A program made the translations under genes and the position numbers. The notes beneath the pieces are model-generated. The model worked only from the letters and a program-made list of their open reading frames with translations. It did not search any database and was not told where the DNA came from. A stretch of 64,000 nt of DNA from Chlorokybus atmophyticus (lineage: Eukaryota > Plantae > Mesostigma and Chlorokybus algae), in contig RHPI01002048.1 in the NCBI GenBank assembly GCA_009103225.1, positions 175,702-239,701 on the forward strand. The letters are read 5' to 3'. Shown here in pieces: positions 1 through 33,800 of the stretch (position 1 is its first letter; every line of letters begins with the position of its first letter).

Positions 1-3000
1 TACGACACTACGCGCTCCTTCTTGTTGGTGTCATGCTGTACGAGCACGGCCCCCATGCCGAGCTTGCTCCAGTCTGTGTGCAGGATGAACGACCTGGTGT
101 AGTCCGGGCGTTGCAGAATGGGAGCTGTGGTGAGGCGGAGCTTCAGTTCCTGAAAGGCCTCCTGTTGTGCCTCCTTCCACACGAACTCGGTGTGCTTCTT
201 CAGTAGTTCGTTGAGAGGCCTTGCGATTTTGGCAAAGTCTTTGACAAACCGTCGGTAATAGTTGGCAAGGCCGAGGAAGGCCCGCAGCCGCGTGAGGTCT
301 GTGGGGGCAGGGATAGCCACCAGTGCTTCCACTTTGGCCTGCTGTACGTACACACCATGGGGCACAATCATATGTCCTAGGTAGGGTACCTTGTGGGTGA
401 AGAAGGTGCACTTGTCAGGGTGCACCGTCATCCCGACTTCCTTCAGCCTCTGTAGCACCTCTTCGATGTGCTGGAGATGCTCCTCATTGCTGTGACCGAA
501 GATGAGGATGTCGTCGATGTAGCAGCGCGCGAAGTCCAACCCCTTGAGGGCTTTGTCCATGACGCGCTGAAACTTGGCCGGAGCGTTCTTCAGTCCGAAG
601 GGCATGACCTTCCACTGGTAAAGCTGCCGGTTTCCCCAGAAGGAAGTCTTGTGCTTGTCCTCCTCCTTGATGGCGATCTGGTTGTACCCTTGGCGCATAT
701 CCAGGATACTATAGACCGTGCAGTCTCCTACATCGTCAAAGATGCCTTCTGCGGTAGGCATCGGATACCTGTCCTGCTTGGTCTTGTTGTTGAGGGGGCG
801 ATAGTCGCCACACATGCGCCGGTCTGTCCAGTTGCCTGCTGAATCTTTCTTCAGGGGCATGACGGTCGCGGCCGCAAAGTCCGATGTGGACTCCTCGATC
901 AGGCCTGCATCTAGCAGCGCCTTGCACCTCCGTTCCACCAAGTTTTCTTCTAGGTTGGCAAGGCGGTACTGTCTTCTGAACACCGGTTCGGTGTCCACTA
1001 GTTCAATGTCCATCTGGTATGCTGAGCAGATGCCCAGCTCCTTCACACTGAAACTGAATTGGCTCCTCCACTTGTTGAGGAGAGCCTCGAGTTGCTCTCG
1101 AGTCTGGCCCGTGGCCAGCGGTCCAATGGCGTGGGACCATGAGGTAGCGTTGGCGACCACTGGAATGTCTTCCACAGTAACTGCTGCCTGCTCCTCCATG
1201 TGGGCGGTCTCGAGGGCGGTGTGTGCTGCTTTGGTCTCGAAAAAGCGAGCAATCCACCCCCCAGCCAGGTGTTCGAGCTCCTGGAAGGACACATGGCGGT
1301 CCTGGAGAGCAAAGCACATTTCCAAGTACCACACCATGCTGTTCTGATCCATGGCGCGCCCTAACAACTGACATTGTTGACTGGTTGTCAGCGTGGAGCC
1401 TGTGATGCTGCTTGGAAAGAATCCCATAGCACGCTCGCGCTCGCGGGCATTGGGTTCTTCCAGCTGTCCAGTGTTGGAGTCCAACACCATGCCGTCGCCT
1501 GCATTGCGGAACGCGTAGGAGCCTGGATAGGATACTAGTGTGGGTAGCGCGCGGCGCGGCTGGCCAGGCTGGTTGCACTGGTAGAAGTGGTGGTGGTCAA
1601 GGCGTGTGACTGGTTGCGCTGTGCGTCCAGGGTCCAGGATGTCATCGACGACGAGATTTCGTGGCCGATTGCTGTATAGGTACTCTGCCAGAAACAGGTC
1701 TTCCACAATGGCCAGGTTGGTCCACTTGGCGCGGACGCGGTGTGCACGAGATCCATGACGCGCGGCATTGATTTTGAGAGGATGCCCCAGCAAGGAGCAT
1801 ACTTGCCGATAGGCCTTGGCGACGTGGTGCCGCTTGTCATCCTCGGAGTGCACATTCTCGATGATGTACCCCAAGGGCCTAGCGATCTGACTGATCTGTA
1901 GGAGTTTGATGACTCTCATTAGCTCCCAGAACAGCTGTGAGCGAGGATCCGAGAGCCCTTGGCCTCTGCCTGCCCTGGAGTGCCCTTGACACTCCCACCC
2001 TGCTATCAGCAGGTCAATGTTGCCGACTGCCTGCAGGTGATCCTTGGTAATCCAGCGGATGTCCTGCGGTAGAGCCTTCTGGCTCCCTTGCAGTGCCGAC
2101 AGCGGTAGCTGCTGCGGGTAGCGCTGGTGCAGCTGTCGTAAATGATGGCTCAGAGCCTCCTGTGCATGAGGGTCAGGGTCACAGTAGAGGTACTTGGTGA
2201 CTGTTGTTCCTGTGTTGAGGACAGCCGCAAGCCCACTGCCTATGCCTCCGAACAGCTCCAGCACGGTGATGCCTTGTTGTCGGCGGAACATGTGGAACTC
2301 CACAACTCCCGTAGCTATGTGGTACTGCTCCTGCACTGTAGCCTGGTCTTTGTAGACAGGGAAGTGTGCAGTGAGCTGAGGCCTGGTCAGCAGCATGTGT
2401 GCTGCTACTTGTGCGCTCCAGCGACGCTCGGATGGCTCCTGAAAGGCCACTTCTTTGGTGACAGTCTCCTGAGACTCATCGTACGGTGTAGGAGAGTCCT
2501 CTTCAGCGTTTAGGCTCGGGCTCGAGCTCGTTGCAGTTGTCCTCGGCTGCGTTCGGGCACGAGGCACACGTGAGCTTTTTGTAAGACTGTAGGTGGCTGC
2601 TGCAGCCGATCTTCGTTGCGAGCGGTCCTTGGCCACCAGTTCGAGAGGTAGGAATCCCTGCTCCTCTCCATCGTCCTCATCCCAATGTGGTCGAAACCAT
2701 GCCTGCTCAGTCCAGCAGTCCAGCCCCATGCCGACAGGGAAGTTGCAGTCCTGTCCCAACAGTAGGTCAAAGGACCCGGCATCGGTGACCACACACCTTT
2801 GTACAATCTCGGTGCTGTGGGAAGGGTTTAGTCCGGTGAGGCGGATGCTCACAGCCTGCTTGGTAAGGCCGAGTACCTTGTCACGGTTGCCGGTTGCGGT
2901 GTCCAGCTGATAGGGACAGGGAAGCAGCTCAGCGCTGGTGATGCCGAGATCTCGTGCGAGGTAGCGCCCAATGATGACAGGCTGTGCTCCAGTGTCCAGC

Positions 3001-3647
3001 ATCACGCGTTTGGGTGCCCGCCCATTGACGGTCACGTGCTTGCCTTGGTTGGCGATCATGGCTGCATTGGCGTTGATGCGCAGCCTCTTGAAGCGACGGA
3101 ACCTCTTGCGTGGAGAGACTGTTGCTTTATTCTCATCTGCGGGGCCTGACCGTAGGGCAGCCAGGGCTCCTCTGCCTGATGGATCTTGTGGGCCTCCTTG
3201 TCCTCGGCTTTGTCCAAACCGTCCTTGTCGCGGTTGCTGGTACACGCGTGGTGGCCTAGGCACTGGAGGTGCTGCTGCAACCTGTCCAAGTGGAGGTGCA
3301 GGAGGGTTGACCCTCTGTGCAGCTGTTGTCATGCCAGGAGGAGTGGCCAGTGGCTGTGGCGGGAACCCTGGAGGACCTGGTGTTTGCGGGACTGCCTCTC
3401 GTGCAGCCTGCTCCTCTGCATAGGTCCATCGCACAGCATGGGCTGCCTCTCTGACTAGTGTACCTTCCCATGTAGCCGTCGCATTGTTGTCGACGTCTAT
3501 ATAGCGATGGTTCTGAGGCATGGGCTGCAGGTACACTGCGCGTAGGAGCCGCGCTCTCATGTCGTGGGTGATGGTGGGCACCCTGAGGATCCCTGCCATG
3601 TAAGCATCCCATCTGCCGTTGACCACTCCCACTTTTTTCCAGCACTG
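1..3647 (-). CDS. pol: Retrotransposon Pol polyprotein: protease - C5 methyltransferase - RT - RNase H (partial; runs off the window)
   Basis: I translated every codon from the stop at 3650-3648 to position 1 and found no stop. Protease DTG lies at 2996-2988, YIDD at 521-510 and RNase H HTD at ~80-72, all in one frame. Confidence 0.95.
1320..2273 (-). other. C5 DNA cytosine methyltransferase domain inside Pol
   Basis: Motifs occur in canonical order: I VLELFGGIG (2264-2238), IV DLLIAGWECQGHS (Cys 1991-1989), V GLSDPRSQLFWE, VI YIIENV (1859-1851), VIII HRVRAKWTNL (1742-1713), IX EPNARERERAMGF, X LLGRAMD. Confidence 0.93.
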
Positions 3648-6600
3648 TTATTGCTCGTGTGCGTACAGTGAGCCGGGTCTCTGGCTGTTGGACATGCTGC
3701 TCGTAAGCAGTGGCGATGCGCCTGCGCTGACATCCTGCCTCCACCCCTGGCAAACTCAGTATCGCCTCCAGAGCTCCCTCCAGAGTGTCAATGGCGGCGG
3801 AAGCCACTTCATCATCGGCTTGCCGTATGGAGCGAAGGAATGCGTCCACCCACGCTATTCTGGCGCCGAAAGCGAACAACGGGACTGCGGGATGGTTGGT
3901 AACCAGCCACGTCACTAACCGTGCGCGTGCCGCGTTGCCACTGTCTCGCATCCCAAGCATCTGCCGCAGTCCGATGCCTTCTTGCCGATGCAGCATGGTT
4001 GCTTGTCGCAACAGAGCAGTGCGTAGTTGTTGCTCTCCAACCAGTCCTGCTCCATCTCTTTGTGTACACCCTTGTGGTGTAAGGTAGCCCCTCCCTGGCT
4101 CCCTTTGGTCCTCAGGTAGATCCTCCACCAGCGCAGGCAGCAACGGGGCGATCACCCCCCTGGTTTGTTGAGCCAACGCCCTCGCTTGGTCAGAGTTGGT
4201 CCCGACGAAGAGCGGAGTGGTGCTGGAGGATGGACCAGCAGTTGGTGACTGAGGTATTGGTGCACGTGTAGCTTCAAGAGCTTGTTCACGTGCAGCAATG
4301 GCGGCAGCTTGATCCTGTCGCCAATGATATGCTTGTTCCAGTGCGTGGTAGCGCTGATGAAGACGAGCGGTTGTAGGAGGTCCAAGTGCTTCATCAATGC
4401 CCAAAGGCAGATCGGCTGCGTCGGCGATTCGCTGCTGGATGGCGTCTCGGCGGTCCCGATACGTGTCCAACGGGCTGGGTTCAAAGGTGGTGGTTGGCAT
4501 GCGTGCAGGCTGGCGAGGGGCGGTCTGCATGTTGTTGTGCAACGCCCAGAACAGCTGCAGAGCCAACTCCAACACTACAGGTGGGCTGTAGCTGATCAAG
4601 AACACCCTGTCACGCATCGGGGGTGCAGTGCCAGCAAGGATCTCATCTTCTAACTGGTGTTGAGTGAGTGCTGGAAGGGTGTGAACCTCTGGTAGCGGGA
4701 AGACGCGATCATCGCGGGCGACACGCGTGGTGCGCTCCCCCCCCCGGCCGAAGGCGATGGTAGTGGGGTCTGCTCCGCGCAGGATGGTTTCCCATGCCCG
4801 TTCAGCTTGCTGACCAGTTGGGACAGCCTGAGTGACGTCGAGAGCGGGCAGAGTGGCTGCGCGCGTCGCTGCAGAGACAGCGGGCTCGACGATGGCCATT
4901 GTGGCAGTTGCGACGGTATCGGTCAGTGGTACGAGAGTTGTCTCAACGCCCCCGGACAGAGGCGCTGCTGCAGTGGGAAGTGCACCGCCCACTGGTGCAG
5001 ATTCGGTAGTGATGGCGGCTGCTGCCAGTGTGCTCACCAGCGTCGGCGTCACGATGCTCACCGGTGTACCAGGTTGTGGTGCAACTGGAGTGGGTAATGC
5101 TGACGTTGATGGAGTCGACGTTGTAGCCGGTGTGGCTGTTGCTGCGGAGGCAGCACCACTGGTGGCTTCGGAGGAGGTGCCTGCTGATGTTGTTGCAGCT
5201 TCCCCTCGTGCTCGTCGTGATGGTTGCACGCGGGACGGAGTGTTCCTGTCTCTCTCGCGTTTTGCAGCCATCAGCGCCCATCGGGCCGTGTAGCAGGCGC
5301 GGTAGTCCTGCTCCTTGTCTTCCTCCAAGCGTGCCATGCGTGCCATTAGGGCTGCCATATGGTCATCAGCTGGTGGGTTGGCTGAAGCCTTGGCGGCAAC
5401 AGCAGCAGCGCGCGGACGTGTCTCTGGTCCCTTACGCTGAGGAGGTCTGTTCTTCCCCCTGTAGCCTTGCTCTTCCTTGCGAGCACTGGCATTGTTGTTG
5501 TTGTTACTGCCACCAGCGTTGTTGCTGTTGTGGGCTCCAGTGTTGTTGCTGTTGTAGCCACTGAAGTTGTTGGCAGGGTGGTTGTAGCTGTTGGCGGGCC
5601 TCAACTCTGGGAACTTGAGCCAGCAGACTGACTCCAGATGACCAATCTTGTGACAGTGGTCGCAAACCAAAGTTGAGTATTCTTCGGTGCACTCCTTTTG
5701 GTAGTGCCCATGCCGTCCACAGCGATGACACAGCACAGGGGCAGCAAGTGCAGCATGAGCTGACCGTTTCCCTTTGTCGCGTGCTGGTGGAGCGTCCCGG
5801 CCACGGTCGCGGCGAGGAGGCTCAGTTGTCGTGCTGACTACAGGCCGTACGGCGCTGCGGTTGGTGTCCAGCACTGCCTTCTCATACACCAAGCGCTTGT
5901 GGATGGCTTGTGCAGTCTCGAAGGCTTCTGTGAGGGTGTAGCCAAGGGGCCTGCTGTAGTTCAGAGTCAGGCGTGTCGACTCGCTCAGAGCAGCATCCAA
6001 CTCATTGACGTATATTACTGCAGCAGCCTCCTTACTGACAATCTTGTAGACAGTGTCCTTCAGCAGACCTTCCAGTCTGGAGTATAAGCGGAGGGGATCG
6101 TCATTGAACTTGCGTCGGAAGCGTCTCAGCTCCTCAACCTTGCTGGTGGTCTGAGGAGGGAGGGTACGGCGCAGGGCAGCGTACAGGTCCTTGAGTGGAG
6201 AATCAGAGATGGCAGCACCTACGGTGATGGCTGGTGCGCGCAGTGCTACTGACCCGAGGGTGAAAGCGCTACCTCCTGCACGAGAGCCAGGTGTTGCTGG
6301 AGGTAGAGGAGTACCCCACTCTGCGGCTGCCGCTTGCTGTACAGCTCGTTGTTCCTCAATGATGCTGGCAGAACGGTCGAGGATGCGGACTCGACGTGTG
6401 GCCTCCTTGGACTCAACTTCTGCAGGGGTCAAGTTGACAAGTACCAACTCTGGTTCCTCCTCCTCTGCCTGCTTGAGAGCTGCAGCTATGGTCAAGCCTG
6501 TTACTGCAACTGAAGTGGCAGGTGGAATGACACCTGCTGGACGGTGCCGGGCTGCAGATGCTATGGTGCTGGCAAGCTCGCCATAGCCGTCTCCTCGATG

Positions 6601-7014
6601 CAGTTCAGCAACGGACTTCCAGACATCGTGTGCTTCATGATCAAGATACTGAGCAGCAATGTGGAAAGAGATCTCATCTGACCAGTCTTTGTTCTTCAGT
6701 GCTTGCTGCCGCATCTTGGAGTGGAACTTGATGATGAACTCATCCAGCGAGGTGGTGCCGGCACGTCCGGAGAAGCGCAGGGATGTGGTTGAACTGGAAG
6801 ATTCCATCTCGTTGTCGTCGCTGTCCGATGATAGTGGAGAAGCTGGATGACGAGGAGTAGAGTGGAGCGGGGTGAAGCTGGAGATGGAGCGCGAGCCTCT
6901 GCTGCTGCGGTCGATGCTTCCGTCACTGGTCCGCTCGTAGGTGAGGTTGGTGGTTGGGCTCCAACTGCTGAGGTCACCCTCGTCTATTGGGGAGAACGGG
7001 GTGGGCCTGCTCAT
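3256..7014 (-). CDS. gag: Retrotransposon Gag (capsid-like region, two zinc knuckles, long extension). The segment below ~3633 is probably an out-of-frame tail.
   Basis: 1252-aa ORF with CHRCGRHGHYQKEC and CDHCHKIGHLESVC (CX2CX4HX4C) at ~5620-5735, located directly upstream of pol. Confidence 0.88.
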   Translation of the reverse strand: MSRPTPFSPIDEGDLSSWSPTTNLTYERTSDGSIDRSSRGSRSISSFTPLHSTPRHPASPLSSDSDDNEMESSSSTTSLRFSGRAGTTSLDEFIIKFHSKMRQQALKNKDWSDEISFHIAAQYLDHEAHDVWKSVAELHRGDGYGELASTIASAARHRPAGVIPPATSVAVTGLTIAAALKQAEEEEPELVLVNLTPAEVESKEATRRVRILDRSASIIEEQRAVQQAAAAEWGTPLPPATPGSRAGGSAFTLGSVALRAPAITVGAAISDSPLKDLYAALRRTLPPQTTSKVEELRRFRRKFNDDPLRLYSRLEGLLKDTVYKIVSKEAAAVIYVNELDAALSESTRLTLNYSRPLGYTLTEAFETAQAIHKRLVYEKAVLDTNRSAVRPVVSTTTEPPRRDRGRDAPPARDKGKRSAHAALAAPVLCHRCGRHGHYQKECTEEYSTLVCDHCHKIGHLESVCWLKFPELRPANSYNHPANNFSGYNSNNTGAHNSNNAGGSNNNNNASARKEEQGYRGKNRPPQRKGPETRPRAAAVAAKASANPPADDHMAALMARMARLEEDKEQDYRACYTARWALMAAKRERDRNTPSRVQPSRRARGEAATTSAGTSSEATSGAASAATATPATTSTPSTSALPTPVAPQPGTPVSIVTPTLVSTLAAAAITTESAPVGGALPTAAAPLSGGVETTLVPLTDTVATATMAIVEPAVSAATRAATLPALDVTQAVPTGQQAERAWETILRGADPTTIAFGRGGERTTRVARDDRVFPLPEVHTLPALTQHQLEDEILAGTAPPMRDRVFLISYSPPVVLELALQLFWALHNNMQTAPRQPARMPTTTFEPSPLDTYRDRRDAIQQRIADAADLPLGIDEALGPPTTARLHQRYHALEQAYHWRQDQAAAIAAREQALEATRAPIPQSPTAGPSSSTTPLFVGTNSDQARALAQQTRGVIAPLLPALVEDLPEDQREPGRGYLTPQGCTQRDGAGLVGEQQLRTALLRQATMLHRQEGIGLRQMLGMRDSGNAARARLVTWLVTNHPAVPLFAFGARIAWVDAFLRSIRQADDEVASAAIDTLEGALEAILSLPGVEAGCQRRRIATAYEQHVQQPETRLTVRTRAITVLEKSGSGQRQMGCLHGRDPQGAHHHPRHESAAPTRSVPAAHASEPSLYRRRQQCDGYMGRYTSQRGSPCCAMDLCRGAGCTRGSPANTRSSRVPATATGHSSWHDNSCTEGQPSCTSTWTGCSSTSSA

Positions 7015-7203
7015 ACAGCTGGTCCAGAGGTGAAAGGGTAGAGTGCTTGTGCTCTACCGTCTATCCTGATGCTGTTACCACCCAACACACTAGTGCTTGT
7101 GCGCACTATGTGATGACAATGATAACGAATGCCCAGCGATGTATCCCTGGGTGCAGACTGCACTATCTGATGCAGATTGCAACACACTCACTTGTGCAAA
7201 GAG

Positions 7204-7555
7204 GGTGACACTGTAAGTCAACAAGCCACTACGATAGGTAGTGCTGTGGACACAGTTCTTTGCATGAGTGGATAGAATGATACACTGTTAAGTGAGGTGA
7301 ATGAGTGTGCAACACGTGGATACAACACCCTGACTACTGAAACAACACACCACCGTCAAGCTCACAGCAATGGCAGGCACAGCGCACAAGAGCATGCACC
7401 GTGTCTCACGCAGTAAGGGAATTCTTGGCAACCGGGGCAGCGTGCTTCCAGTTCAAGTCGCTTCACAAGCTCTTTAGAAACAGAGTCTTTACTTCTTAAT
7501 ACTCCTAGTACTCACAGTACTCCTAGTACTCACAGTACTCACTTACAGTGTCACC
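7204..7555. repeat. Segment bounded by a perfect 15-bp inverted repeat (inner 7206-7553 reads TG...CA); LTR-like or small TIR element
   Basis: GGTGACACTGTAAGT at 7204-7218 and ACTTACAGTGTCACC at 7541-7555. Confidence 0.55.
7500..7542 (+). repeat. 18-bp tandem repeat, 2 full copies plus a partial
   Basis: TACTCCTAGTACTCACAG at 7500-7517 and 7518-7535, then TACTCAC. Confidence 0.85.
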
Positions 7556-9976
7556 AGCCAGTCTGGTGACGTGACTTCCTACTTATACATGTCAAATCAT
7601 GACTGTGCAGGGCCACGCGGGCACTAGGCCAACGGTCACATCGAGGCCTCATGCTATTTCGGAAATCTCCTAAGACTCGATATAGCACATGTGTTCTTAA
7701 CAGACTTACAACTGATCAGCTACGCGCGGTCCCTACAGACAGGTCTATAAAGTAGCCCTAGCTACATGCTACATGAGTGATACAGTAGCCAGCAGTAGGC
7801 TGGGGCTCGCGCGGTCTTCATGCTGGTAGCCCAGGCGTGGGGCTGGGTGTAGGCATGCTTGAGAAGAACTGGCATGCGAGGGTAGATGGCATGACAGAGC
7901 GCATGCGCGTGCGTACGCGAGTGGCGGAGCGCGCGTGTGTGCTTGGCAGAGGGGGCAAGGTTCCGGTGTGAATACCGTGCCTTGGTGAGAGGGTTGTTGA
8001 TTGGACCAACTCACAGGTGACAAGGCACGAGCACCGTCACACTTATCATGTCACATATTGTACACCTTGCTCTCATGTCACACTGCTGAGCATGCAAGAA
8101 GTGTTAATGCAGTAATCTCAAATGATTTGTTGTCATCATCATAACCATATCTGCATAATGCAAAACGCATCTTTAATTAAACCATCATAATGACATGTAC
8201 GCACTTTTTGATATGTAAAGAGTTGTAGTGCATTACATGCATAGTATACGATGCTTACGTCAAGCCTTTTTATTAATAGTCGTTGAAAGCAGTAGATGCC
8301 GCTGCGCTGAAAATGACTATTTTGCACCGTGCTTTTAGATAATGTCAATGGTTAATGATGCGCCTCAATGATATTGCTTAATATTATGGTAATGTGGATC
8401 GCATTGCGTCGTGGCATAATTTGTGAGTAGAGACACGCTTTTGATGGAGTCGATGAGTTTCTTTTGTGTCACAGCATCTCTAAAGATGAATATAACGCAT
8501 GCATCGCGTTTGGATATACAAGTAATATTATGACACGTGTATGTAAGATATTGGGCCAATAATTCTTGATAAGACATGCATAAACGTAAAATTGCAGCAA
8601 TCTCAGCAGTAATATACAAAAACTTCTCAATCCAAGCACGTGCCAGAGCTATGCGTAAGAAACGGCACCCGTATCAATTTATCAGGGATACATTTTTTTG
8701 TTACTTCATGAAACCTACATTCAGACCTGCGGTGAAAGCACATGAGTTATATAGTAGATTGATGTTGCCAGATAACTATTAAAATGACATGGCAACTACA
8801 TTAATGTTGTAATGTAATATAATATATGCTACAAAGATATCATGTAGGTTTAAAACCCATTACTTGTAAGATCACATGTTGACCGTTTGCCCACCCACAT
8901 ACCGCCGTCGGTTCAAGTCGGCCGAACAAGCATTGGCCCCCAACCCTAGGCGGCCTATTAAGTTAAACCTAGCCTCAAGCATTTACTCATGTCACATGAG
9001 TTATGTGACATGAGGCGCCAACGCGAAAGCGCGAGAGTCTGCAGTTGTGAAAGTTGAATCTTGTTTAAAACCCCCAACGGTCACATCAATTGCACCGGAA
9101 GCGACAACAAAAAGTGACTTGCGTTGCGTACCTCGTGCAATGAACTTGCCTCATCATGTTACGGCTCACGAGAAATGCAAGTAGGTGACCGGGTCACTGA
9201 CCTGCTTACATCATGTGACAATGTTGACGGGCAAAGTATGACCGTCGACTTTTGGCCCAGCTCACATTGTCAACATTTGGATCAGTGGCGGTCGAACATC
9301 AGTTGGCGGTGCGGACAACTGGGTGCACACAGCCATTGATCTGGCATCCAGGCCGCATTCTACTCGCCTTCAACGGGCCTGTAACGACAACACACCGCGC
9401 GATACGCAGAGCACTCGTTGCAGTTACGTAACTCAAATTATGATATCCACCAAAATTGCATTTTCATTACCATTGTCGATATCGGCTGCAATCGACGGTG
9501 CAGCTGAAAACGCCGGCAGGTCTAGACCAACGGCGGGCGGCGGATCCCTTTAGCGATATCAGTGATGCACAACGTGTCAAGGCCAAGCCGTGCCGCCGAG
9601 ATACGCTGAATTTGGTTGTGACTCACAACTTGTGAGGCACTGTCCCGTTCCACTGGTCTGGTCGATGAGCTGGAAGCGAGGTACTGACACTGTTTCTAGT
9701 ATCGTACACCTCGTAGTTGAGTATCGCGCGCACAGCTCAGTAGCTGCCGTATTTTGTCTGGCAAAACATTTGGCGTTTTGCATTTGCCCGCCTTCAGTCA
9801 GCTCAGCGCCGGCGGCGTTCAAGGACGACGAGCAGCAGTAGGAGGCGGCAGAAGAGGAGGAACACAAGGAGGGGTTGGAAAAGAGTGTCTGAGAGGTGTT
9901 CCTTAGCGTGGAATGCCGTTTGGCGGGGTGTGAAGGTTGTATTCTTGTCTGCCTGGCACACAGCTTGACGTGTGAC

Positions 9977-11866
9977 ATGGCGGCGGCGGCGCGTTTGTCG
10001 ACGGCGTGCGAGTCTTTGTCCACAGCATGGTCAGGGGAGTCTCTGCGGGTGCCCAGCCACAAGAGGCAATGGAGGAGGCCCCAGGCGTCCGCTCAGGTAG
10101 CTCGCGTGGTGGTGGAGGAGCATGTCGCCGCAAGGGTGGAGGTTGCCCCGCGGGCGGCGGTGGACCGGCTGGGTGCGTCGGCGGCGTCGTCCACCACGTC
10201 GGCTGCGGACGCGGCAGGAGTCTTGCTGCGGGAGGCCTCCGTTGAGGCTGGGGAGTGCCTGGAGGTGGCTGGCCGGGCTCAGCTCTCCGGTCATGTCAGG
10301 ATCAGCGGCGCAAAGAACAGCGCTTTGGTTGTCTTGGCTGGGGCGTTGCTTTGCTCAGAGGAGGTCGTCCTCCGCTCTGTGCCCAGGCTGCAAGACATCA
10401 GGCGCATGGGCCAGCTGCTCCAGAGCGTCGGCGCCAAGTTCCAGCATGACGGGCACACAGCTGTCATCGACGCCAGCACGCTCACGTCCAGCGAGCCCCG
10501 CGCGGACACCGTCAGGCAGCTGCGCGCTTCGTTTTTCGTCATTGGGGCGTTGCTGGCTCGAACAGGCGAAGCTGTCTTGCCACTGCCTGGTGGCTGCAAC
10601 ATTGGGGCTCGACCAATCGACCTGCATGTTCGTGGGTTGCAGGTCAGTTGATTCCACTTGAGCTGCCTGTTGCACGGTCTTTGCACATGTTTACCAGAAT
10701 TACATCATGGAGCATGATGTAACTCTGGTAAACTCCTTGCACGTGCATGCTGACACACATTGGGTGCTGCCGGCATCATGGTTGTTGCTGTGTGCGTTAT
10801 GTGTGTGTACACAATTCCGTGTCTCAGGGCGTAAGTTTAGATGGTGCAGCTTCTGACAATGCTGCTATGTGTGCAGGCGCTAGGTGCAGATGTGCAGATC
10901 AAACATGGTCGCGTACATGCCAAAGCATCGAAGCTCACCGGGGCGTCCTTCTATCTTGATTTCCCTAGCGTGGGCGCCACAGAGACGCTGATGATGGCTG
11001 CAGTGTTAGCAGAGGGGGAGTCCGTATTTGCGAATGTTGCACAGGAGCCGGAAGTGGTTGATCTTGCCAACTTCCTCATTAGCATGGGAGCGCAGATTAA
11101 GGGCGCGGGCACGAATTGCATAGTTGTCAATGGTGTGAAGAAGCTGCACCCTGCTGAGTTCACCATCATCCCCGACCGCATTGAGGCTGGCACCTTCCTT
11201 GTAGCAGGAGCCATTACCAATTCCAGCCTTTCACTTGCACCAGTCATCCCTCAGCACTTGACTGCTGTCATTTCCAAACTGCAGGTACTTACCAAGCTCC
11301 AGTACAGCATCATCTACTGGACTTGCACATTGCAGCCTGCCCAAGTTCCATGCCTCCGCCTAATACCTGTTGCTTGTCTGCAGGCATGCGGATGCAGTGT
11401 AGTTCCTGACGGACCAGACCGGCTGCGCATCATTCCCACAGAGTCGTTGCGAGCAGCGGACATTACAACACTGCCCTACCCAGGGTTCCCAACTGACATG
11501 CAACCGCAGTTCATGTCGCTGCTCGTGCATGCTCAAGGGGTATCCACAATACGTGAGACAGTGTTTGAGAAGCGCATGCGGCATGCAGAAGAACTGCAGC
11601 GCCTGGGTGCAAACATCAAACTCTCTGGCAGTGCTGCCACCATCTATGGACGCCTGGACAACAAGGCCCTTTGGGGAGCACCAGTCACTGCCACGGACTT
11701 GAGAGCAGGCGCTGCACTCGTCCTTGCGGGCATGGCTGCTGAGGGCGTCACAACCATTGATGGTCTCGAACACATAGACAGAGGGTATGAGCTTTTGGAT
11801 GAGAAGCTTCGCAACTTAGGAGCAGACATCAGGAGGGTTCCTCGGCCGCGCTCTGTTGAAGAGTGA
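9977..11866 (+). CDS. murA: UDP-N-acetylglucosamine 1-carboxyvinyltransferase (MurA) with predicted plastid transit peptide; 3 exons (9977-10642, 10877-11284, 11384-11866)
   Basis: Motifs [33 protein letters not shown] (catalytic Cys), [51 protein letters not shown] and HIDRGYE. Two GT-AG introns and an ~90-aa Ala/Ser/Arg-rich N-terminal extension. Confidence 0.96.
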
Positions 11867-13120
11867 CCAGCAGTTAAACACTGCCACAGCCTGTGATATA
11901 TAAGCTTCAGAGCTTGAGCTTAGAGTCGCATCGCTTTTAATCCATGCTGCATCTTGCAGTGGTACATAGACTGGCACATAGACACCGCACAAGCAATGTA
12001 AAAGTAACGTTATTTGTCTTGTTTTGTTCTGAAGCTGAAGTGCGCAGCAGTTTATGTAAGGCTGCATCCAGCAAAAAACAGCTAAAAAAATGTAGCAATG
12101 CGAGAAGGCAATGGCGCATACAGCTGGGGCCAGTAACCGGCTGCGTGCACAAGTGCACAAGCTTGCACAATGCATTTCCCAAGTGGTTAGATGCTCCGTT
12201 GAGTCACCAAAGTCATGTCTTTACTGCGTGGTACTAACCACTTGCCACCACAAGCTCCAATTGAGATCGTTAGTAATGAGACCATGCGCGCATGTGTGGC
12301 ATAGCTTATTAGATGAAACTCTTCATAGAAACACTATGATAAATGCGTTGCACGTAACCCTTGTATGACATACCACGCAAAACCAAGCCATGTAAAGGGC
12401 TCTTGTAATACATCAAATGTCTTCATGCTCAGAGACACGAGATGTTCAGCTAGATGATAATTAATGCACTGCGATGATTTGCACCTCTTGGCATGACCTT
12501 TTCAATCCTTGTTGCACTTCTGCCAGCTCCGACAATCGCCTAATGTTGTGAAATGATAGAGTCCGCAACGACAGCACCGATCACATGCATGTCTCATGTT
12601 ATTTGGTCATTGTTTTGGCAGTAATGGCTCATGGCATTATGCCAGTTAGCTCGCCGAAAAGGATGAAACCCTTCATGCATGAGCATATCATATATGTATT
12701 ACCCAATCGATGAACATATTGTGCAACACGCATTGCCAATGTATCTAAGCCATGTCGATTGCACAAGCTTATATAATACATGCAATGCAAATGAATGAAT
12801 GAATAGGTAATTAATGGTCGGCGAGTATCACATACATTATTGTGGTGAGTGTTGTGTACATGTTGGATGACTGATAACATAAGTTGTGTGGAAACCACAA
12901 TGTACACCGCTTGCACGATTTGGGCATGCGCATACAATTACCCGATGTTCTCACCATGCACGGCTTATCACACATGCAAATGTTAACATCAACCTTTTTG
13001 CAAAACCGCTAGGCTATGTACCCCAAGTAATTAACCTACATACGTGAGCCCCAAACACTTGCAAGCCTGAAGATAACAAGCGTTTACATCGCAGGTGGTA
13101 AAATCCTCAAGTTATTTATT

Positions 13121-13326
<206 letters not shown>

Positions 13327-14607
13327 GCCTGTTATTCTAGCTTCATGACAGTACGAGTGTAAACAAACATAAACAAACATAAACTTTTTGCATTATGGCT
13401 GCTCCTCAAAGGTTACAAGTAGTGCACATGCTTTGCTATTGGATGGTGGATCGCTGAACAATGCCACCAGCCATTGGAATCGCGCAATTAGCTGCTATCA
13501 TTGTGTAGGTGAATTAGGCATGTAAGCTAAGACCCATCCAAATAGCCATGTCAGTAAAGCACGTGTACCTGAAAAACACTACTTTATGTACACACCTATT
13601 GCTTGTGCATGGCTGTGCATGACCGCTTTAGACATGCTGCTCGTGTGACCATGATAGATTGTTATCCACGTATCCTGCCACTGTTGTATAGGGGGCCGGG
13701 CCAGGTCGGAGAATAGATATGCATACAATGCCGCATGTGATTGTCCAAAGTATGCAATGCTGTATATCCCTGCGCGTGTTTGTGCACAAGAGATAGTAAG
13801 CTACATTTGTCTTATGCTGGGGTGTGAACTACAAGACTTACATGAAATGCCTTACACCGTCCGCATACGGTATCACAGACATGCACCAAGCCATAGCTAG
13901 ACAAGTAGAACAACACAACCTCACAAGACAATATATGATTTGGCCAGGGGGTGGAGCTGGCCACTTCTTAACTCAACCACCAGATACACCACCACTACAC
14001 CACACTATATGCGTGCATATGCGTGCAAGTGCGTGCAGTAGTAGGAATGGCAACACCAACAGACACCAACCTGCAGCAGCCGAGCAGGGGAGACATAGTG
14101 CTGGTGAGTTTGCGGGCTTGGCAAGTGAGAGAGTGCTGTGCGATGGGTGTGCAACATGTGGTGCGTGCATGCCTAACATGGAGGTCTGGGGTAGTGTAGT
14201 GCGTTAGGTATGAGCAAGTAGCGTGGATAGCCCGGTGGTGTATGTATCTGATAAGCTATGCTTGCATGCTTGTCTGTGTGCTGCTGTTTGCGTCATGCAT
14301 GCCTATAACTGCCTCATGCACATCCTGTACAGTCCACCACCTGTGTTGGAAGCTATGCGCAGACGTCAACACAACGTATGGTGACTCTGGTCGTTGCTGT
14401 TAATTGTGGCTGGTGCACTGTTTGTGAATGCTGTCTGACCGATGTACATTGTGCATGAATCCTACGTGCACTAGCGCAATGCATCATTGGCTTCTGCTAG
14501 CACTCGCTCCTAACGGAGCAGCCCAATCAGCAGCTCCTGTGCCACAAGCACAGCAATAACGCAGCAATTCGTTTTTACAACCACAGTAGAAAATACCCTG
14601 CAGCACT

Positions 14608-17600
14608 TCAAACAACTTGATAACTGTCAACGGCCAAGCTTGTTCTTGATGCAAACTTGGCCGGGGAATTGTCTGATGTACTGAAAACGCCAGCAACCTG
14701 TCCACGTGTTGGAACTTTTGATCAACATGCAGGGTAAGATGGGCAAGCACCCCAGGCAGCACAAACGAGTGTACATGCGCAAGTTGCTCCACCTTGACAT
14801 CGCAGAATGTCTTGTTGGAGGAGAACTTGATGTCAACAGGGAAGAAGGCATTTGTGGAAGCGGCAGTATGCACAACAAACTCCATGGCACCACTGCAGAG
14901 ACCGAGAATAAGTAAAGTACTCATGCCAGAGTATGCAGTTATAAGCTTGAGACCTATGGAGATGCAAAGTTGCACGTGCAAGTCCTGTGCAGAACGGGCC
15001 TTCATACCTTCTATTGGTGTTGTCTATGAGCTCAATTTGCCATTCCAGTACACCTTTCCTCGCATCATACCTGCAGAGGTGCGATCAAACATGTCCACAA
15101 ATCAAAACGGGCAGTGCGCTGTTGCTGACATGTCAATGCCATGACCATGAATTTGTGCAGGTTGCTCACCGGAAGTCACCATCGACTTGGTTCACTGATG
15201 GGGGATCACGTGCAGGCGGTACTGGAATGGTGACCAACACCTTGTGCAGCTCAAATTGTGAGGTGGATTCGTACTCTATGTTTACATAGGTCTCATTGCC
15301 CGATGCTGATGGCCAACAATTCACTGCGCAACAAGCAAGCAGTAAGTAGAGAACATGTGCACAGACAGGCTCATCTTTACGACATCACGCACTTGGTATC
15401 ATTACAAGAAAAGCACCTGTGAATGGGATCATGCTCTCATCCTTGCATTGCATGCGCCATTTTAACACACCCAGCGCACTTCCTGTAGGAAAGGGACGGC
15501 TGGAATCTTTGAGGCCCAGTATGCTTTGCTGGCTGTGGAGGGCCTTATCAATGTTTGGATGGGTCTTGAACTGGAAGCCAGGGTTGTCACCAGCTTCAAC
15601 CTTGATGCGAATGTAAGCATCCTCCTCACGCACAACTTCAAGCGCCATGGTTCCTTGAACCTCAAAGTTCTCCAGGCCGCCATCCTTCTTGATGACAATG
15701 TTGAGAACTTCTTCAATGGCGATTGTGATGGGGTCCGATGCGGCCTGCACGATCGTGCTGCCTGCAGCAGGCCTACTAGACCCCTCCGCCTCGACAATTT
15801 CACCTTCCGCACGTAATGACTCCAAGAACTGCTTCGCTTTTGTAGTAGACTTGCCCAACTGCATGCCCTTGCCCTGCCCGGATGTTGGCGCGGCAGGTGC
15901 TGGCCACAGATATGACAAGATAAGGGCGTGCATGGTATGCATAAGGCAACAATGCACCAGTGCACAACTGGCAACAGTACGCACCATTAATTTCTGCAAA
16001 ACCACCAATGGGCGAAGCAATGAACGGCTCTGACTTTGGAGCAGGTCGATCGCTGCTGATGCCAAATGAACCATTGCTGAAATTCGGGCGATCTCCCTTG
16101 GCCTTGTCCATCTTAGTCTTATCAATTTCAGAAGCCTTCCGCTTCATGATGTCCTTGGTATCGTTAACCTTGCTCTAAAGAAGCATAAAGAAACAGGCAG
16201 TTGTGATAATAGCCTGGTCTTCTGACTGACTGCCATGAGGTTTACTCACCTGTATGATCATCTTGTGCAGTTTCTCCTCGTGACTCTCCATTTCAGTGAA
16301 TGTTCGGACTTGTGCAACCGTCACATTCTCCTTGTGGCCTTCCGATATGACTTCATCAAAGGCAAATATGAGCTCAAAAGCTGAGCGAACAATGCCCTCT
16401 TCATCCATCTGTGTACAGAACTCTGGAACCTGTCAGTAGCACAACAAACTGTCAACCTTCAAAGATGCAAAGAACACACTATGAAGGCACGGTGGACGTA
16501 GCAATTGAACCATAGCGGTCATGGTGCTGATACCAGCTTTGATAGAAGGCGCAGAGTCTCCAAGTCCTCCAGAATGTTAGACTGCTTGTTGGTGACCAGC
16601 AGCAGGTACAGACCTTCCAATGGCTGATACACGTATCGAACATTCTCAGTCTCCACATAGGTGTGCTGCTTGCCGCTGCCCACCAGCTTTGGGAAGGCTG
16701 CCAGCAAACCTTCTATTCGGATGCGAGTCATATCGACAAACTGCCTGGAAAGCAAAGCTGCACCAAAGCAGTGCGTCACATACCAGCAGCAAGTCAATTG
16801 CAATAGACGATGCACAACTGAAATGGCAACCATGGCATAAGCACAAACCATGTCTTGCAACGGATAACCAATGGGCCAAAACATCAATCACTGCTGTACT
16901 GCCACCACCAACAAACAAGGCCGCTGCTATTACTATGTACAACATTGACTGCAAACGCAGCCATGTCGTGTTGGACGTTGACACCCTTCCCTGCAGGCAG
17001 CAACGCATAGGTGTAATGCACATTGCTGCAATACCTTTCCCGGACTTAGTGACCACAGATGCCGCCAACACCACCTGCATAAATGCCACATAAAGCTCAG
17101 TATGTATTCATGCATGATTTGCTTGTCGACTTAGGAACCACACCTCAAAGGCAAGCAAAAATCTGCATTCAGGCAGCCACACAGCAGCATGGCAAGCGCA
17201 TGCAATGAGCTATGTGCAATGGACAACAGAATCGGTGAGTACCTCAATGTACAGACTGCAAACCGTGAGACCGCATTGCAGTGCGAACCGACCAACTGCA
17301 TCCAACTTCTGTGGCGACAAGAACAATGCGGTCGCAAGATGCAGATTCAACGTGATGTGATAGCCCATAAAAGGTGCAGCAGATAGTTAGATGCGTACGT
17401 GCATTGCACAATGCTGCATGAGCCAGATGCTTGGTTGTGCCCACACGACAATGGTTAAAAAGTTGTCGATTGATACTATTCAATGAGCAGATCGAGTACC
17501 ATGCAAGACGTCGAAGAACTTGTACTCATAAAATGCTGAATAAATAGCATCATACCATACCATACCATACCATACCATACCATACCGTACCATACCATAC

Positions 17601-24423: not shown

Positions 24424-24615
24424 NNNNNNNNNNNNNNNNNNNNNNNNNNNNNNNNNNNNNNNNNNNNNNNNNNNNNNNNNNNNNNNNNNNNNNNNNNNNN
24501 NNNNNNNNNNNNNNNNNNNNNNNNNNNNNNNNNNNNNNNNNNNNNNNNNNNNNNNNNNNNNNNNNNNNNNNNNNNNNNNNNNNNNNNNNNNNNNNNNNNN
24601 NNNNNNNNNNNNNNN
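24424..24615. other. Assembly gap (192 N), followed by a C18 run
   Basis: Visible directly in the sequence. Confidence 0.99.
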
Positions 24616-27813: not shown

Positions 27814-30800
27814 TCACACAGTGAGAATGCCTATTGGAGGTGCGACATAACATCGTAAAACAGTAGCATTAGGAGCCGGGTTCCGTGCAAAAATGCGCGG
27901 TGGGGCAGCCGCAGCACTGACCAGCAACTGTTCATGAAGCTGTCCAGCATCCACCATGCTGCGCAGCAACTCGCGAGCCGAGTTCACACTTACGACGCTA
28001 AGTGCATCCAGCATGGCCTCTTCAGGTATCCCAGGCATGCGCAGTGCAAAACCAACTGCTCGCCGCTCCAATGCTTGCACAAATTCTTCGTCAACACTCT
28101 GGCCATCAGCTGTAAGCCATGCACGCATTGGACGCCGACCTGCATAGCACAAGTTAGCGCTGTACAACTTATTGAGCAGGCCTGCACTCCACGGCATCAC
28201 CTGTAACACGCTGCACAGTTGAGGCTTTGTCGGCGCTGACAACTTCCTTCATGGGCAACGTCAGACGCCTGCAGTGCACGTCTGCCACATATCGCGCCTC
28301 ATGAAGTGCATCCACCTGCGAGGTCATTCGCATCACAATGTGTTGTCACTCGAGGATTCCGCAGCAGCGCCACAGTCCACCAACTTGGTCATGAAGCATG
28401 CAGGGTGCTAAGTCCTGGGCCATGTATGCATGCTTGCAAGGCATGTGTGCAGGAGTGGTAACCATAGAGTCACCGCATAGATGAGTTGCGCGGTTTCCAA
28501 AGCAGCTATGCAGTCCTGAATGACACTTTGGCTGACTGGCTCTGCTTCGCTGGTTGTCACAGAGGAAATCAACTCGTCAACAGTCGCACCTGCTTCCCCG
28601 TGCGATGAAATTGCCTACACCAGCCCGTCAAAGCGATAAGAGTGCTGAGTGCATAACATGTTGGCAGGCTTATGGGCATTGGTGATGTCTTTACAACATG
28701 CTGGCAAGACGAGCAAAGCCACATACATCATGCTTGCTAGCTAACATGACCATGCACCGTGTTTGTGACAGTGCTTGCCCACCTTGTGACAACTGTCAAC
28801 ACGTGTCTCGTTGAGTTGGGGATGCAGGTGCTCTATGATGGCACGCAGCACGTTGTCACTTCTTTCACTTGCGGTTGCCTGTTGGTTGGCTTGCGGGACT
28901 GCAGTCAGCACTGGCCGCTCCTCAGCATGCTTATCTTGGACGGCATGACATGAAGTTGCTTGTGCTGATGGAGACTCCGCATCTTGGAAAGCAGCGGTTG
29001 CAGCATTGATGGCAACGCTGGCCGTAACAACATGTGTTGCTTGGCGCTTGCTAGGCTTCGCAGCCTCCGTGCCCACCAATTGCCGCTTGCGCCCGTGCAG
29101 TCTTTGTTTGCGAGGCAAGTGTTGTTCACCGGCCGGCTCCACATCAATGCAAGCGTCGCCATCGCTAGCATTCTGAGGGAGGGATTCTTCAGCTTGCGAC
29201 ACAACCTGCGCCGAATGACCGACTGCATTGCTGGCTTCATGCATGTGCCCGGCGCTTGGAGCTACCGCAAGCAAAGCAGGGGTTGATGTTCCTGCATCAC
29301 CATCAATTGCAAGCATCACAGCAGCAGGACTGTCCACAGGAGCAGCAGGATGCATCTGGCGCAGAACTGCCAGCGGCACTTCAGCAACCGCCTGTTCGAC
29401 GTCATCAAGCCACTCGTTGCGAGGGGCGTCATTGAGCGACTCTCGATAGCGGTCTGCCGCTGTTGTTGCTGGTTTGGCTGCGTAGTCACCCAGCTTCATG
29501 CGCAGCTCGACATGATGATCAGCGGCCATTGCTAACACGCAAGCAACATCACCCCCACAAGGGTGCTCTGGAACACTCCACTCATCATTCATCTTGCGCA
29601 CATCCGTAAGGCAGCTGAGGCACAATGATGCCTCAAGACCCAGTGCGCGTGGGAATCGCGGGACCTGACAACTGGCCTTGAATCGCAGCGAAAGAGCAAA
29701 TCGCCGCCCTGATGACTTCTTCTGCTTCGACTGTGCATCAAAACAATATCAAGCATTGCAACCAACAACTGCAACGATATGCTCCAATGATGACTTGGCA
29801 ACCTACCACAAAACCCTGCCTGCGCAGCAGCTGGAACCCAGCCGCAACCTCTCTCTCAGTAAACCGCTGGAAAGCGGCTGCTAAGACGGGAGGCACACGA
29901 CCATCGGTGCCGGTATGCAGAAGCAGCAGCCTGATAAGGTCTGCAACACAAGATAGCACTGTACTAGGGATCTTTTCCCTCAATGCTTGTTCATTGTGCG
30001 CAACATGACCACGCTGGACCGCATGCTCTTCTTGCTGCCTACGCCTATCCTCCCCTTGTGGCGCTTGAACTTTCTGATACACGACAGGGCGACGGCGAAT
30101 GGAGGTGGCCCTGTTGCCTTCAAAGTAGTGCTGCTGCTGAGTGCAGGCTTCCAATGCTGCTTCCACCTGGACTTCAGTGGGCTCCAGTGGATCATGTGCT
30201 TGGTCAGCACTCATATCACCTTCTGTCAAGTGATCTAGATGGGTGCGCGCAGCAGCTGCAAGCTTTCTGTTCGCTTGGACGAGGCTTGTTTGACCAGGTA
30301 AAGCCATCGGGCGCTGATGTGTTGTGCGCTCAGCGGCACGCTGTTGTTGAAGCTGGTTGACTTCGTACGCAATGAGCAATGCAATGGACCTGTCTGTGGC
30401 TTCTGAACGATGTGGATTCCTCCTCATAACCACAAAACGCCTGCGACAGAGGTCCGGGGTAAACCTGTGCGGAAGACCTGTGTAATGCAAGCTGTGAGGT
30501 ATATACAGATAGACGGTGGTATACAGCATCTTGTCGCAGCAAATGTGTTGATGCAAGCGTAACAGTACAAGCGCATATGCAACCAACAACCCGTATAAAG
30601 TGACTATTGACAGAGCTTCCTTGACCTCACGTACCTTCGATGTTAGCCCAATCTGTGCTGACGCCGCTGCCATGGACAGCATGCCATTTTGCATATGCAC
30701 GCAGCAGCATCTTATCATCCTCAGGCAGCCAGACATGCCGAGCTCTGCGCCTTTCTTTGCGAATGGGTTGTATCAGTGAACAACCAGTTGCAGGGGTTTC

Positions 30801-33800
30801 GTCAAAGTCATCAACATCTTCTTCTTGCTGAGAGTCCTTGTCAGGAACTTTCTCCTTGGCAGCAGCCGCAGCAGCTGCCACTTCCGCCGCCGCTGCTGCT
30901 TCTTTGGCAAGACGTTGGCGCTTGTAAGCTTGCACATGTCCCGCCTCTTGAAAGGCTGCGGCTGGTCTTTTCGCCACAGAGCCTGCACAAACTCTCTGAG
31001 TCGGCAGGCAAGCTATGCAATACTGCTTGTATACATGGCACTCATGCCTTATCTCTAACCTGTTTGCTTGCCGGTGTACTGAACTACAGAAGAGACCTGC
31101 AAGCGGAGTGCTTGCAATCGCTGTACGCGTCTCTGCTCATAAGTAAACCTCAGGAGCTGTTCGGCGCTGCACCCCAGCTCAGCAGCCAGAGTCTCTCGCC
31201 TCTCCAGGGTCAGTGGCTTCTCTAGTTGCTGTTTCCTGAACAGATCGGCCATAGCAGCTCGCTGAGAAATGCTTGCTGCAGAGTCCGTGCACCAGCTTTT
31301 GGGGCTGATCATCTCCGGCACCGCTGAAGCAGGGAAGAATGTACGCGCCTCATGCGGAGGCAGTTCTCTAAAAACAAACTCCATTGCATGCCAGTAAGTA
31401 TCTACGTCCGCAACTGTTGCAAAACTAAAGCTGCGAGCAACCCTGCCATCCTCCTCTGGTTGCACGTTTTGCGCAAGTGCAAAGGACAGCGTGCCAGGCA
31501 TTTCTACAAGCGCCTGCACCTGAAGGTGGTAGCGACCAGTCGCCTTTGGCACACTACGAACATGGCGCACACGGGGTGCAATGAGTGTCCTGACTAGTTG
31601 CATGCGGTTGAGGGTGTGCATCGCTGTCACTACTCGGCCCAAGATTTGTGCATTGTAGCAGATCTGGTTCCTGTCTGTGGCAGGCAAGTCGCCAACCCGC
31701 ATACCAGCTGTGCAGCGCCGGACAAAGTCCGGGACAGGGAAGTGGATGCCTAATGCTTGTGCAACCAGCTCAAGAGGCATGGCCTCAAGCAGCCCTTCTA
31801 GCTCAAACTCATGTGGCAACGATGTGGCTGCAGGCTGATTACTGCGCTCAGTGGTATTTTGCTTGTCTAACCCTGCAACACCAGAGGCTGAAGACTGCCT
31901 CAGTCTAGTTCCATCCTTGCTTCCCACAGTCCCGTGGAGCAAGCCGACCACGTGTTGCACCAGAAAGTAGTGAAGCATACGTGTACGGACCATCTTGGCA
32001 AAGATGAATCCTTGCTCTGCCAGCAGTGCTGTTGTCAAGGAGGGTAGCAGGATCGTTTGTGTTTTGTCAATGCCAATGCGAGGTGGGGCTGATGGCAAGT
32101 TTGGATCTGCCATGGCAATGCGGCGATTCTCTGATATGCCAGTGCGCTTTTCGCGCAGGCGGCTGGCGGCTGCAGCCAGCAGTTCTGACTCAGGACGTGT
32201 GGCTGTTCTGCTCAGCAACACCCGGAAACTGAGTGACTTCACGCCGACGAGGGTGACCCTGCCAAGCTTGCAGACACCCTCCTGCACAAGCTGGCCAATA
32301 ACGCGGTCAACGGTTTTCGGGACAGCCTTTATTGGAGCTTTGCCTGGCTCCAAAATTGCCATCATAGCACATGCGTCAGCATAGGTCACCATTTCCTCAG
32401 CCAAAAGTGTACTCCTCAACATTGTCACGTGGTTAGCCATCTTGGGCTTTGCTGGCCTTGCGCGCCTGCTGCCAGCTGCAACCTCAGTGACTGCTGGTTG
32501 CTCCAAAACTTGCAGAGAGGTTTGATCGCTGACAAGCATGTGCATAGCCGACGAGGGAGCGGGCTGCCCACTTGCTAGAGCTCTGGCCTCCTCTGCGGGT
32601 CCTTTGAGCTCAGGTGGCTGCGCTATTGCGGTGCATTTTGTACTTGTTTGCAACTGTGACTCCGAGGGCACGAACAGGCGATACACCGTTTGCTTGCCCT
32701 GGCTTTCCATGCTGCGCTGCACATTGAACCTCTTCTGCAACTCAGTGATATGGCGGAAGGTTCGTTTGTAGTTCAATCCAAGCCGCTTGAAGAGATCCGT
32801 AACAACAATGCCCTGGGAGCCGCTGGCCTTGACCGTGTTAAACAATTGCTCCAACAGACTGAGTTCAGCAACAAGTCCAGAGCCTGTTGTTTCCGCCAAG
32901 AAATCGCCTGGATCATCGTCATCCGGGATGTTGTCGGAAGATGCAGTAGTAGGTGCATACTGTGCGCGCAGCCTGAAACACGCAATAGTGGCCCTTTCGC
33001 TGCGGGCGAAAAATTCTTCAATATAGCCACCTGACAGCAACTTTGTCTTCACTCTGCGCCACTCTCTGTGTTGGGCTTGTGCGCCCATGTACCCCAGTGC
33101 TCTCTTCAAGTCACCTTCACGCATCTCCTGTCCAGCTGCTGCAGCAACCAGTGAGATGGCATCTTGAACAGGCCTGTCAACACTTCCCACTGCATACACC
33201 TCCACTTCATCTGAAGGAGGGCCTGCTTCAGCTTTATGAACAGATTGAGCTCGCCTTTCCACACTTCTGAAAACTGGCAAAGGAGCGGCATGCTCGACAA
33301 ATGCCGTCAAATGCACCAGATTGGTGTGATAACCAGGTACTGCAGTGCTATTGGCCTGCATGCGACGCGGGTCGGTCACAAATACTTCGCGTATGGCAAC
33401 AGCCCCAGCCGCTTCCAAGAGACGCAGGCTGTAGAATGCTACTCTTGTGTGTACATTGAAATCGGTTGCAAGCTGCGCTTGCAGGACACCTTGGTGTCTG
33501 CAGCAGCCAATGTTAGCTTTCCAACCAAAACGGCAGCGTAAGTTGCTTGAGTCCAGGCAATCTCGCATCACATTGCTGTATGCTGCAATTGATGATGCGT
33601 TGATGTGGTGAGCTTGTGAGCTTTCAATCGCAAGCAATGCTCGTCTCACCTGGATTTGCCAACAGCTTCGAGAAGAGTTAACGTATCGGAGGTGAGATCG
33701 ATGCTGCCGATGCTGTAAATGCCTAGTGTGTTCAGGCGGAATTCTGTTGAGGCTGCAACTCGAAGGTCCGCACGCCATGAGTGGTTGCTTTCCAGGACAG

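Follow-up and report, generated by a model that had tools for sequence, protein, structure and literature searches.

We have identified a Ty3/Gypsy retrotransposon that carries a cytosine-5 DNA methyltransferase (MTase) domain inside its Pol reading frame, at the left end of a 64,000-nucleotide stretch of DNA from the alga Chlorokybus atmophyticus (assembly GCA_009103225.1, contig RHPI01002048.1, positions 175,702 to 239,701 of the forward strand; this whole stretch is the window, and all coordinates below refer to it). Judged by its best sequence-profile and fold matches, the domain is of the DNMT3 type, and the element is a further member of the published Gypsy-DNMT3 kind of retrotransposon, described in Klebsormidium nitens, in a different, earlier-branching streptophyte host. 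What the window holds is very probably the 5' two-thirds of one such copy. Hosts fight transposons chiefly by cytosine methylation, so it is paradoxical that a transposon should bring along a de novo MTase of its own; this paradox has been examined experimentally in one paper only.

The element lies on the minus strand, where positions 3-3647 form one stop-free pol frame of 1215 codons. This frame is absent from the list of open reading frames (ORFs) because it runs off the left window edge, as had been correctly supposed in an earlier note on this DNA, made from the letters alone. The same note had described a complete C5 MTase lying in frame between the protease and the reverse transcriptase (RT) of a Ty3/Gypsy Pol, and both translation and Pfam searches confirmed it: the order on the minus strand is gag (with a CCHC zinc knuckle), protease, complete DNMT3-type MTase, RT and RNase H. 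The integrase, which comes after RNase H in relatives, would lie beyond the window edge. The features of the element are the following:

3 to 3647, minus strand: pol reading frame with protease, DNMT3-type MTase, RT and the start of RNase H (translation, Pfam)
2748 to 3035, minus strand: aspartic protease, pol residues 205-300 (Pfam Asp_protease_2, PF13650, E-value 4.4e-08)
about 1290 to 2282, minus strand: DNMT3-type C5 MTase domain, pol residues ~456-786 (PF00145, homologue extent, profile, fold, motifs)
366 to 827, minus strand: RT core, pol residues 941-1094 (RVT_1, PF00078, E-value 5.4e-33)
6 to 179, minus strand: start of RNase H, pol residues 1157-1214, cut by the window edge (RT_RNaseH_2, PF17919, E-value 1.6e-16)
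3259 to 7014, minus strand: gag reading frame of 1252 codons with its ATG at 7014 (ORF list, translation, Pfam, relatives)
3633 to 3636, no strand assigned: four extra bases in a T6 run, A6 on the coding strand (contigs of public runs, frame check)
7015 to 8100, minus strand: 5' untranslated or terminal-repeat region (sequence and composition)

Within pol, the translation gave the protease active-site sequence MLDTGAQ at 2982-3002 and the RT motif YIDD at 510-521. The stop-free gag frame extends over 1265 codons, from 7053 to 3259, with its first ATG at 7014. It contains the CCHC zinc knuckle at 5683-5730, and both this knuckle and the N-terminal capsid-like part match the gag of related elements. 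The gag frame also includes an Ala/Thr/Pro-rich linker of ~600-700 codons (~3650-5450), located after the zinc knuckle and before the protease, for which we found no match in related elements, their linkers being 250-470 residues long. Regarding the 5' region, its outer border at ~8100 is approximate, as it was set only by a drop in G+C. No direct or inverted repeat involving the element, this region included, was found in 1-16000 or in the whole window, and the 3' end of the element lies outside the window.

The pol frame matched the DNA_methylase family PF00145 with an E-value of 1.7e-10 and 41.3 bits against a cutoff of 22. This was the check that the earlier note had proposed, and the match, although significant, spans only the motif IV-VI core of the domain. 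Homologues align over pol residues ~456-786, that is, window ~1290-2282, which makes the 1320-2273 given in that note essentially right. The NCBIfam model TIGR00675, which is tuned to bacterial Dcm enzymes, scored 48.3 bits, under its cutoff of 100.65. The motifs read from the translation are listed here:

2232-2258, minus strand: motif I, ELFGGIGSG
1968-2003, minus strand: motif IV, AGWECQGHS, with the catalytic Cys at 1989-1991
1851-1865, minus strand: motif VI, IIENV
1713-1754, minus strand: motif VIII, GSRAHRVRAKWTNL
1533-1547, minus strand: motif IX region, LPTLV
1347-1367, minus strand: motif X, LLGRAMD

Motifs I, IV, VI, VIII, IX and X thus appear in the unpermuted order that had been claimed, not rearranged as in DRM enzymes. 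Motif IV of this domain reads EC and not the canonical PC.

To which class the domain belongs was addressed by sequence and by predicted structure. Using the single sequence to search solved structures, DNMT3A, DNMT3C and DNMT3B came first (E-value ~1e-07), before M.HaeIII, M.HhaI, DNMT2 and DRM. A profile of 39 family members searched against the PDB ranked DNMT3A at the top (E-value 2.7e-25, 92 bits), followed by DNMT3B (~1e-22), DRM (1e-13, 54 bits), M.HhaI (3e-10, 43 bits) and DNMT2 (1e-07, 34 bits), and gave no match to DNMT1 up to an E-value of 0.01. An AlphaFold (AF2) model built on the same 39-member alignment had a mean predicted local distance difference test score (pLDDT) of 91.5 and a predicted template-modelling score (pTM) of 0.90. 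When this model was compared with the PDB by Foldseek, the 50 best matches were, without exception, catalytic domains of DNMT3A/B/C, with target template-modelling scores of 0.80-0.84. A search of the ESM Atlas returned only general PF00145 clusters.

The domain also shares with the mammalian DNMT3A/3B/3C catalytic domains, its best profile and structure matches, the motif VIII pattern AHR.R..W.NL and the C-terminal pattern ER..G...LLGR. In contrast to them, it is only ~21% identical in sequence, its target-recognition region is ~50 residues longer, it lacks PWWP or ADD reader domains (none was found by Pfam in the pol frame) and it is embedded in a retrotransposon polyprotein. Such companion domains are absent from protist and algal DNMT3s, so PWWP and ADD are not defining features outside animals (PMC12344493).

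Among 204 full-length family domains, the catalytic Cys and the Glu of the ENV motif are conserved in 100%, the two motif VIII arginines in 100% and 98%, and the Gly and Asp of motif X in 99% and 98%, respectively. As far as can be read from the sequence, the SAM (S-adenosylmethionine)-binding and catalytic residues of the MTase are those of an active enzyme, and they are invariant across the family. We also considered 'EC instead of PC' in motif IV as a family signature and rejected it, since 37% of the relatives have PC.

We then turned to sibling copies of the element, using contigs from three public runs aligned to window 1-6000. Many siblings are present: in run X1 alone, 331 pieces aligned to this region, 58 of them at ≥99% identity, 98 at 95-99% and 175 at 90-95%. 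None of the contigs of the public runs showed an insertion or deletion inside pol. Taking the 40 best-supported of 162 differences from sibling contigs, synonymous and non-synonymous changes numbered 18 and 12 in pol, and 6 and 3 in the MTase domain. The synonymous share (18/30 and 6/9) is far above the roughly one quarter expected without constraint, although this is a rough count and not a ratio of non-synonymous to synonymous rates (Ka/Ks). This leaning towards synonymous differences fits selection on the MTase domain, as the earlier note had suggested.

The MTase is an integral, conserved part of Pol and not a nested insertion, because each of its two borders is spanned by contigs from independent runs and the same layout recurs in relatives from other genera. 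One could argue that the domain is foreign to the element and in frame only by chance, as a host gene fragment, through nested insertion or through chimeric assembly, but nothing was found in favour of this. The 1215-codon frame has no stop, the bridging contigs come from independent runs, the order protease-MTase-RT is common to Closterium, Klebsormidium and many metagenomic contigs, and the MTase and RT trees described below give the same split. With these results against it, a foreign origin is refuted and retains next to no probability.

Regarding the junction between gag and pol, the earlier note had called the frame intact, which holds for pol but not for the whole element. In the window copy, pol is in the +1 frame relative to gag because of the four extra bases at 3633-3636. 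Contigs of runs X1 and X2 do not have these four bases, and after removing them the window sequence reads as a single stop-free gag-pol frame of 2349 codons, from 7053 to 3. Intact siblings encode gag-pol as one frame, and gag, protease and MTase are in one frame also in relatives from other algae. A programmed frameshift at the A6 run was considered and rejected: pol is in +1 and not in -1, and the siblings simply do not carry the four bases, so we read the insertion as a mutation of the window copy and not as a recoding signal. In run X2, ~18.6 of a depth of 63.5 at position 3633 is without the deletion; therefore, the window form seems to be present in the reads and not in the assembly alone. 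The window copy was probably disabled recently, by a 4-base insertion that uncoupled pol from gag.

In order to contextualize the element, we compared it with published retrotransposons that carry DNA methyltransferases. KnitGypsy-Dnmt3 of K. nitens is a Gypsy element with DNMT3-type domains within its Pol; these were placed in the DNMT3 clade by phylogeny and have Ka/Ks values <0.2, and the elements have split, DIRS-like repeats (de Mendoza et al. 2018, PMC5890265). The same paper reported DIRS and LINE (long interspersed nuclear element) retrotransposons with DNMTs in Symbiodinium, so that the cases in dinoflagellates and Klebsormidium named in the earlier note agree with the literature. Later papers, including PMC12344493, still cite only the K. 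nitens and Symbiodinium cases, one of them in the words 'streptophytes (Gypsy-DNMT3)'. In both KnitGypsy-Dnmt3 and the window element, a DNMT3-type domain with its motifs in the unpermuted order sits in the frame of a Ty3/Gypsy Pol, and both give signs of purifying selection on that domain, in the window element from the rough count above. They differ in their hosts, in their MTases, which are only ~37% identical, in motif X, which is well conserved in the window family (with the percentages given above) whereas its conservation among the K. nitens members is poor (PMC5890265), and in the 4-base insertion between gag and pol of the window copy. The SymbioDIRS-Dnmt3 elements of Symbiodinium also have a DNMT3-type domain inside a retrotransposon Pol, but they are DIRS elements with a tyrosine recombinase, from dinoflagellates, and their authors hold that the acquisition was independent (PMC5890265).

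A direct comparison with K. nitens was possible through a protein fragment recovered by our profile search (KFL_005910020, E-value 9e-34). We took its locus (L001, DF237540.1), which may or may not be among the copies of the published work, as the K. nitens representative. It contains, at 4770-7259, a decayed Gypsy-DNMT3 copy in which the MTase is upstream of the RT, as in the window; the MTase is spread across three frames with two stops and the RT is reduced to a stub. The MTase of this copy is 29-38% identical to that of the window (E-value 5e-30), and its RT fragment falls inside the window element's side of the RT tree (type A, see below) with a support of 99 in the Shimodaira-Hasegawa-like approximate likelihood ratio test (SH-aLRT). 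We also tried to place the decayed MTase in the MTase tree, where it formed a long branch with no supported position; for this reason the RT was used instead. From the domain order and the grouping of the RT, it follows that the window element belongs to the published Gypsy-DNMT3 kind. The high novelty that had first been attributed to it is consequently not borne out, there being a K. nitens copy with the same domain order and an RT of the same lineage. The annotation of the K. nitens locus splits this copy into three small hypothetical genes; a histone-fold gene and an HSP70 gene lie a few kb away.

The wider family proved to be large: when 1.84 billion cluster representatives were searched exhaustively with the profile, 597 clusters (at 50% identity) were obtained with E-values up to 1e-30. 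Two domain orders were found. In type A, the order is gag-protease-MTase-RT-RNase H-integrase, and it is the order of the window element, Closterium and Klebsormidium. In type B, it is RT-RNase H-MTase-integrase-PHD, as seen in Scenedesmus sp. PABB004, Haematococcus, Hariotina and Tetradesmus, the last from a transcriptome sequence; the MTase tree also puts Chromochloris with type B. From 324 fetched proteins, 120 were of type B, 43 of type A and 161 were fragments. The Haematococcus gene models P0132 and P0144 were left out, as they have odd domain orders that are probably due to gene-model splicing. Among the chlorophyte relatives, P0063, P0108, P0204 and others have the DNMT3-type domain after RNase H and before the integrase, and terminate in a PHD finger.

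The chlorophyte Gypsy elements have an MTase that is homologous to that of the window (37-42% identical, with the same invariant residues), an RT of the same broad lineage and single long gag-pol frames. They differ from the window type in the position of the MTase, which comes after RNase H and before the integrase instead of between protease and RT. One branch separates type A from type B in both the MTase tree and the RT tree, with SH-aLRT supports of 97 and 99, respectively. Since the split is the same in both trees, we conclude that the domain and its carrier evolved together and that the position of the domain changed once. The few named taxa are streptophytes in type A and chlorophytes in type B, which points to an old family of the green lineage and not to a capture specific to Klebsormidium. 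When three distant PF00145 proteins were added to the MTase tree as outgroup, type B nested inside type A. The very long branches of the outgroup, which reach up to 4.5 changes per column, make this direction weak.

Taken as a whole, there seems to be about an even chance that Gypsy-DNMT3 is a single, old lineage of retrotransposons belonging to the green lineage as a whole, made up of hundreds of diverged clusters with two fixed domain orders, and that its MTase was acquired in one capture and changed place within Pol in one later move. In the published literature, as far as it could be searched, we found no mention of the chlorophyte branch or of the two domain orders. On its own, the window copy adds little, because the kind was already published; what it contributes is an early-branching streptophyte host. 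Together with its relatives, it indicates a family that is large, old and under selection for its catalytic residues, so that Chlorokybus, Closterium or a Scenedesmus-type alga could be used for testing the function of the enzyme. The part that most deserves attention is the existence of two architectures across green algae.

As for what the enzyme does, we propose the following for active siblings of the window copy. The gag-pol polyprotein would be cut by the element's own protease, and the DNMT3-type domain, either free or still on the N-terminus of the RT, would use SAM for de novo methylation of cytosines, most likely at CG. It would act on freshly synthesized double-stranded cDNA, in the particle or in the pre-integration complex, before or at integration, so that the new copy would arrive in the genome with a host-like methylation mark in place. 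Release by the protease followed by methylation of the new cDNA, as suggested in the earlier note, is a hypothesis that had already been published (PMC5890265). Judging from its conserved residues, the domain is probably an active DNA C5-methyltransferase; that cDNA self-methylation is its role we propose only tentatively, at somewhat less than an even chance. Among such enzymes, activity is on record for the SymbioDIRS-Dnmt3 domains alone, which methylated CG de novo in yeast (PMC5890265).

Several observations weigh against this proposal. The sole published assay of a Gypsy-DNMT3 domain, that of K. nitens, gave no methylation in yeast, a result that its authors considered inconclusive (PMC5890265); it carries little weight, since human DNMT3B also failed in the same assay (PMC5890265). 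The residue that precedes the catalytic Cys is Glu in the window copy, as in 55% of the family, while the canonical Pro is found in 37%. The window copy itself would need a +1 shift to make Pol from gag. Moreover, among the listed runs that hold the element, none is on record as RNA, these runs being available as contigs only. Finally, the observed/expected CpG ratio of the element is 0.65-0.72, compared with 0.72 for the window background; CpG depletion was tried as a footprint of methylation and gave no signal, the element being equal to its background.

Other roles have to be set beside self-methylation of the cDNA. The enzyme could be active but work in trans on chromosomal DNA, be it that of the family's own resident copies, of competing elements or of the host nearby, and in this manner limit the copy number of its own element or reshape local chromatin at integration sites. 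The conserved catalytic residues of the 204 family domains suit such a role, the PHD finger at the end of the relatives' integrase fits elements that interact with chromatin, and the KnitGypsy-Dnmt3 copies of K. nitens are themselves methylated at CHH and CHG (PMC5890265). The present results are compatible with action in cis and in trans alike; the position of the domain inside Pol, beside the RT, fits in-particle action at least as well, and the CpG depletion of the element does not depart from the background. Action in trans is, in our opinion, unlikely, though it deserves to be kept in mind.

We give clearly less credit to a substrate other than double-stranded DNA, such as the genomic RNA of the element, an RNA:DNA hybrid or single-stranded cDNA during reverse transcription. 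In the window lineage the domain is directly upstream of the RT, most of the family has the Glu-Cys form of motif IV, and DNMT2 is a case of the same fold being able to act on RNA. The lack of DNA methylation by the Klebsormidium domain in yeast could also be counted here (PMC5890265). However, sequence and predicted fold are nearest to DNMT3A/B/C and not to DNMT2, more than a third of the family keeps the canonical Pro-Cys, and the yeast negative is weak for the reason given above, so that we consider such a substrate improbable. Lastly, the domain could be non-catalytic and kept as a DNA-binding, chromatin-binding or structural module of Pol, in keeping with activity being on record for no Gypsy-DNMT3. 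Against this, the residues for catalysis and SAM binding are invariant or nearly so in 204 diverse relatives, which would be needless for binding alone, and this last option appears highly improbable.

Outside the retrotransposon, the window contains several other features. At 9896-11866, on the plus strand, two long ORF pieces make up an EPSP synthase gene (PF00275, E-values 2e-64 and 8e-24), an intron being the probable cause of the split; the gene runs in the opposite direction to the retrotransposon, whose 5' end is ~2-3 kb away. An exon-sized ORF at 15385-16125, on the minus strand, matches the medium (mu) subunit of clathrin adaptor complexes (PF00928, E-value 2.7e-13). Further along, a 907-residue ORF at 31055-33778 (minus strand) contains DUF7599, DUF7646, DUF7647 and DUF7645, recent Pfam domains with no function assigned, and two ORFs downstream of it on the same strand (28741-30736) gave no Pfam match; this ORF and its neighbours may be another mobile or lineage-specific gene. 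Assembly gaps consist of a single N at 13163 and 192 N at 24424-24615. Towards the right end of the window, 60881-61155 holds three copies of a 90-nt repeat within 275 bases, the second and third being 84% and 60% identical to the first.

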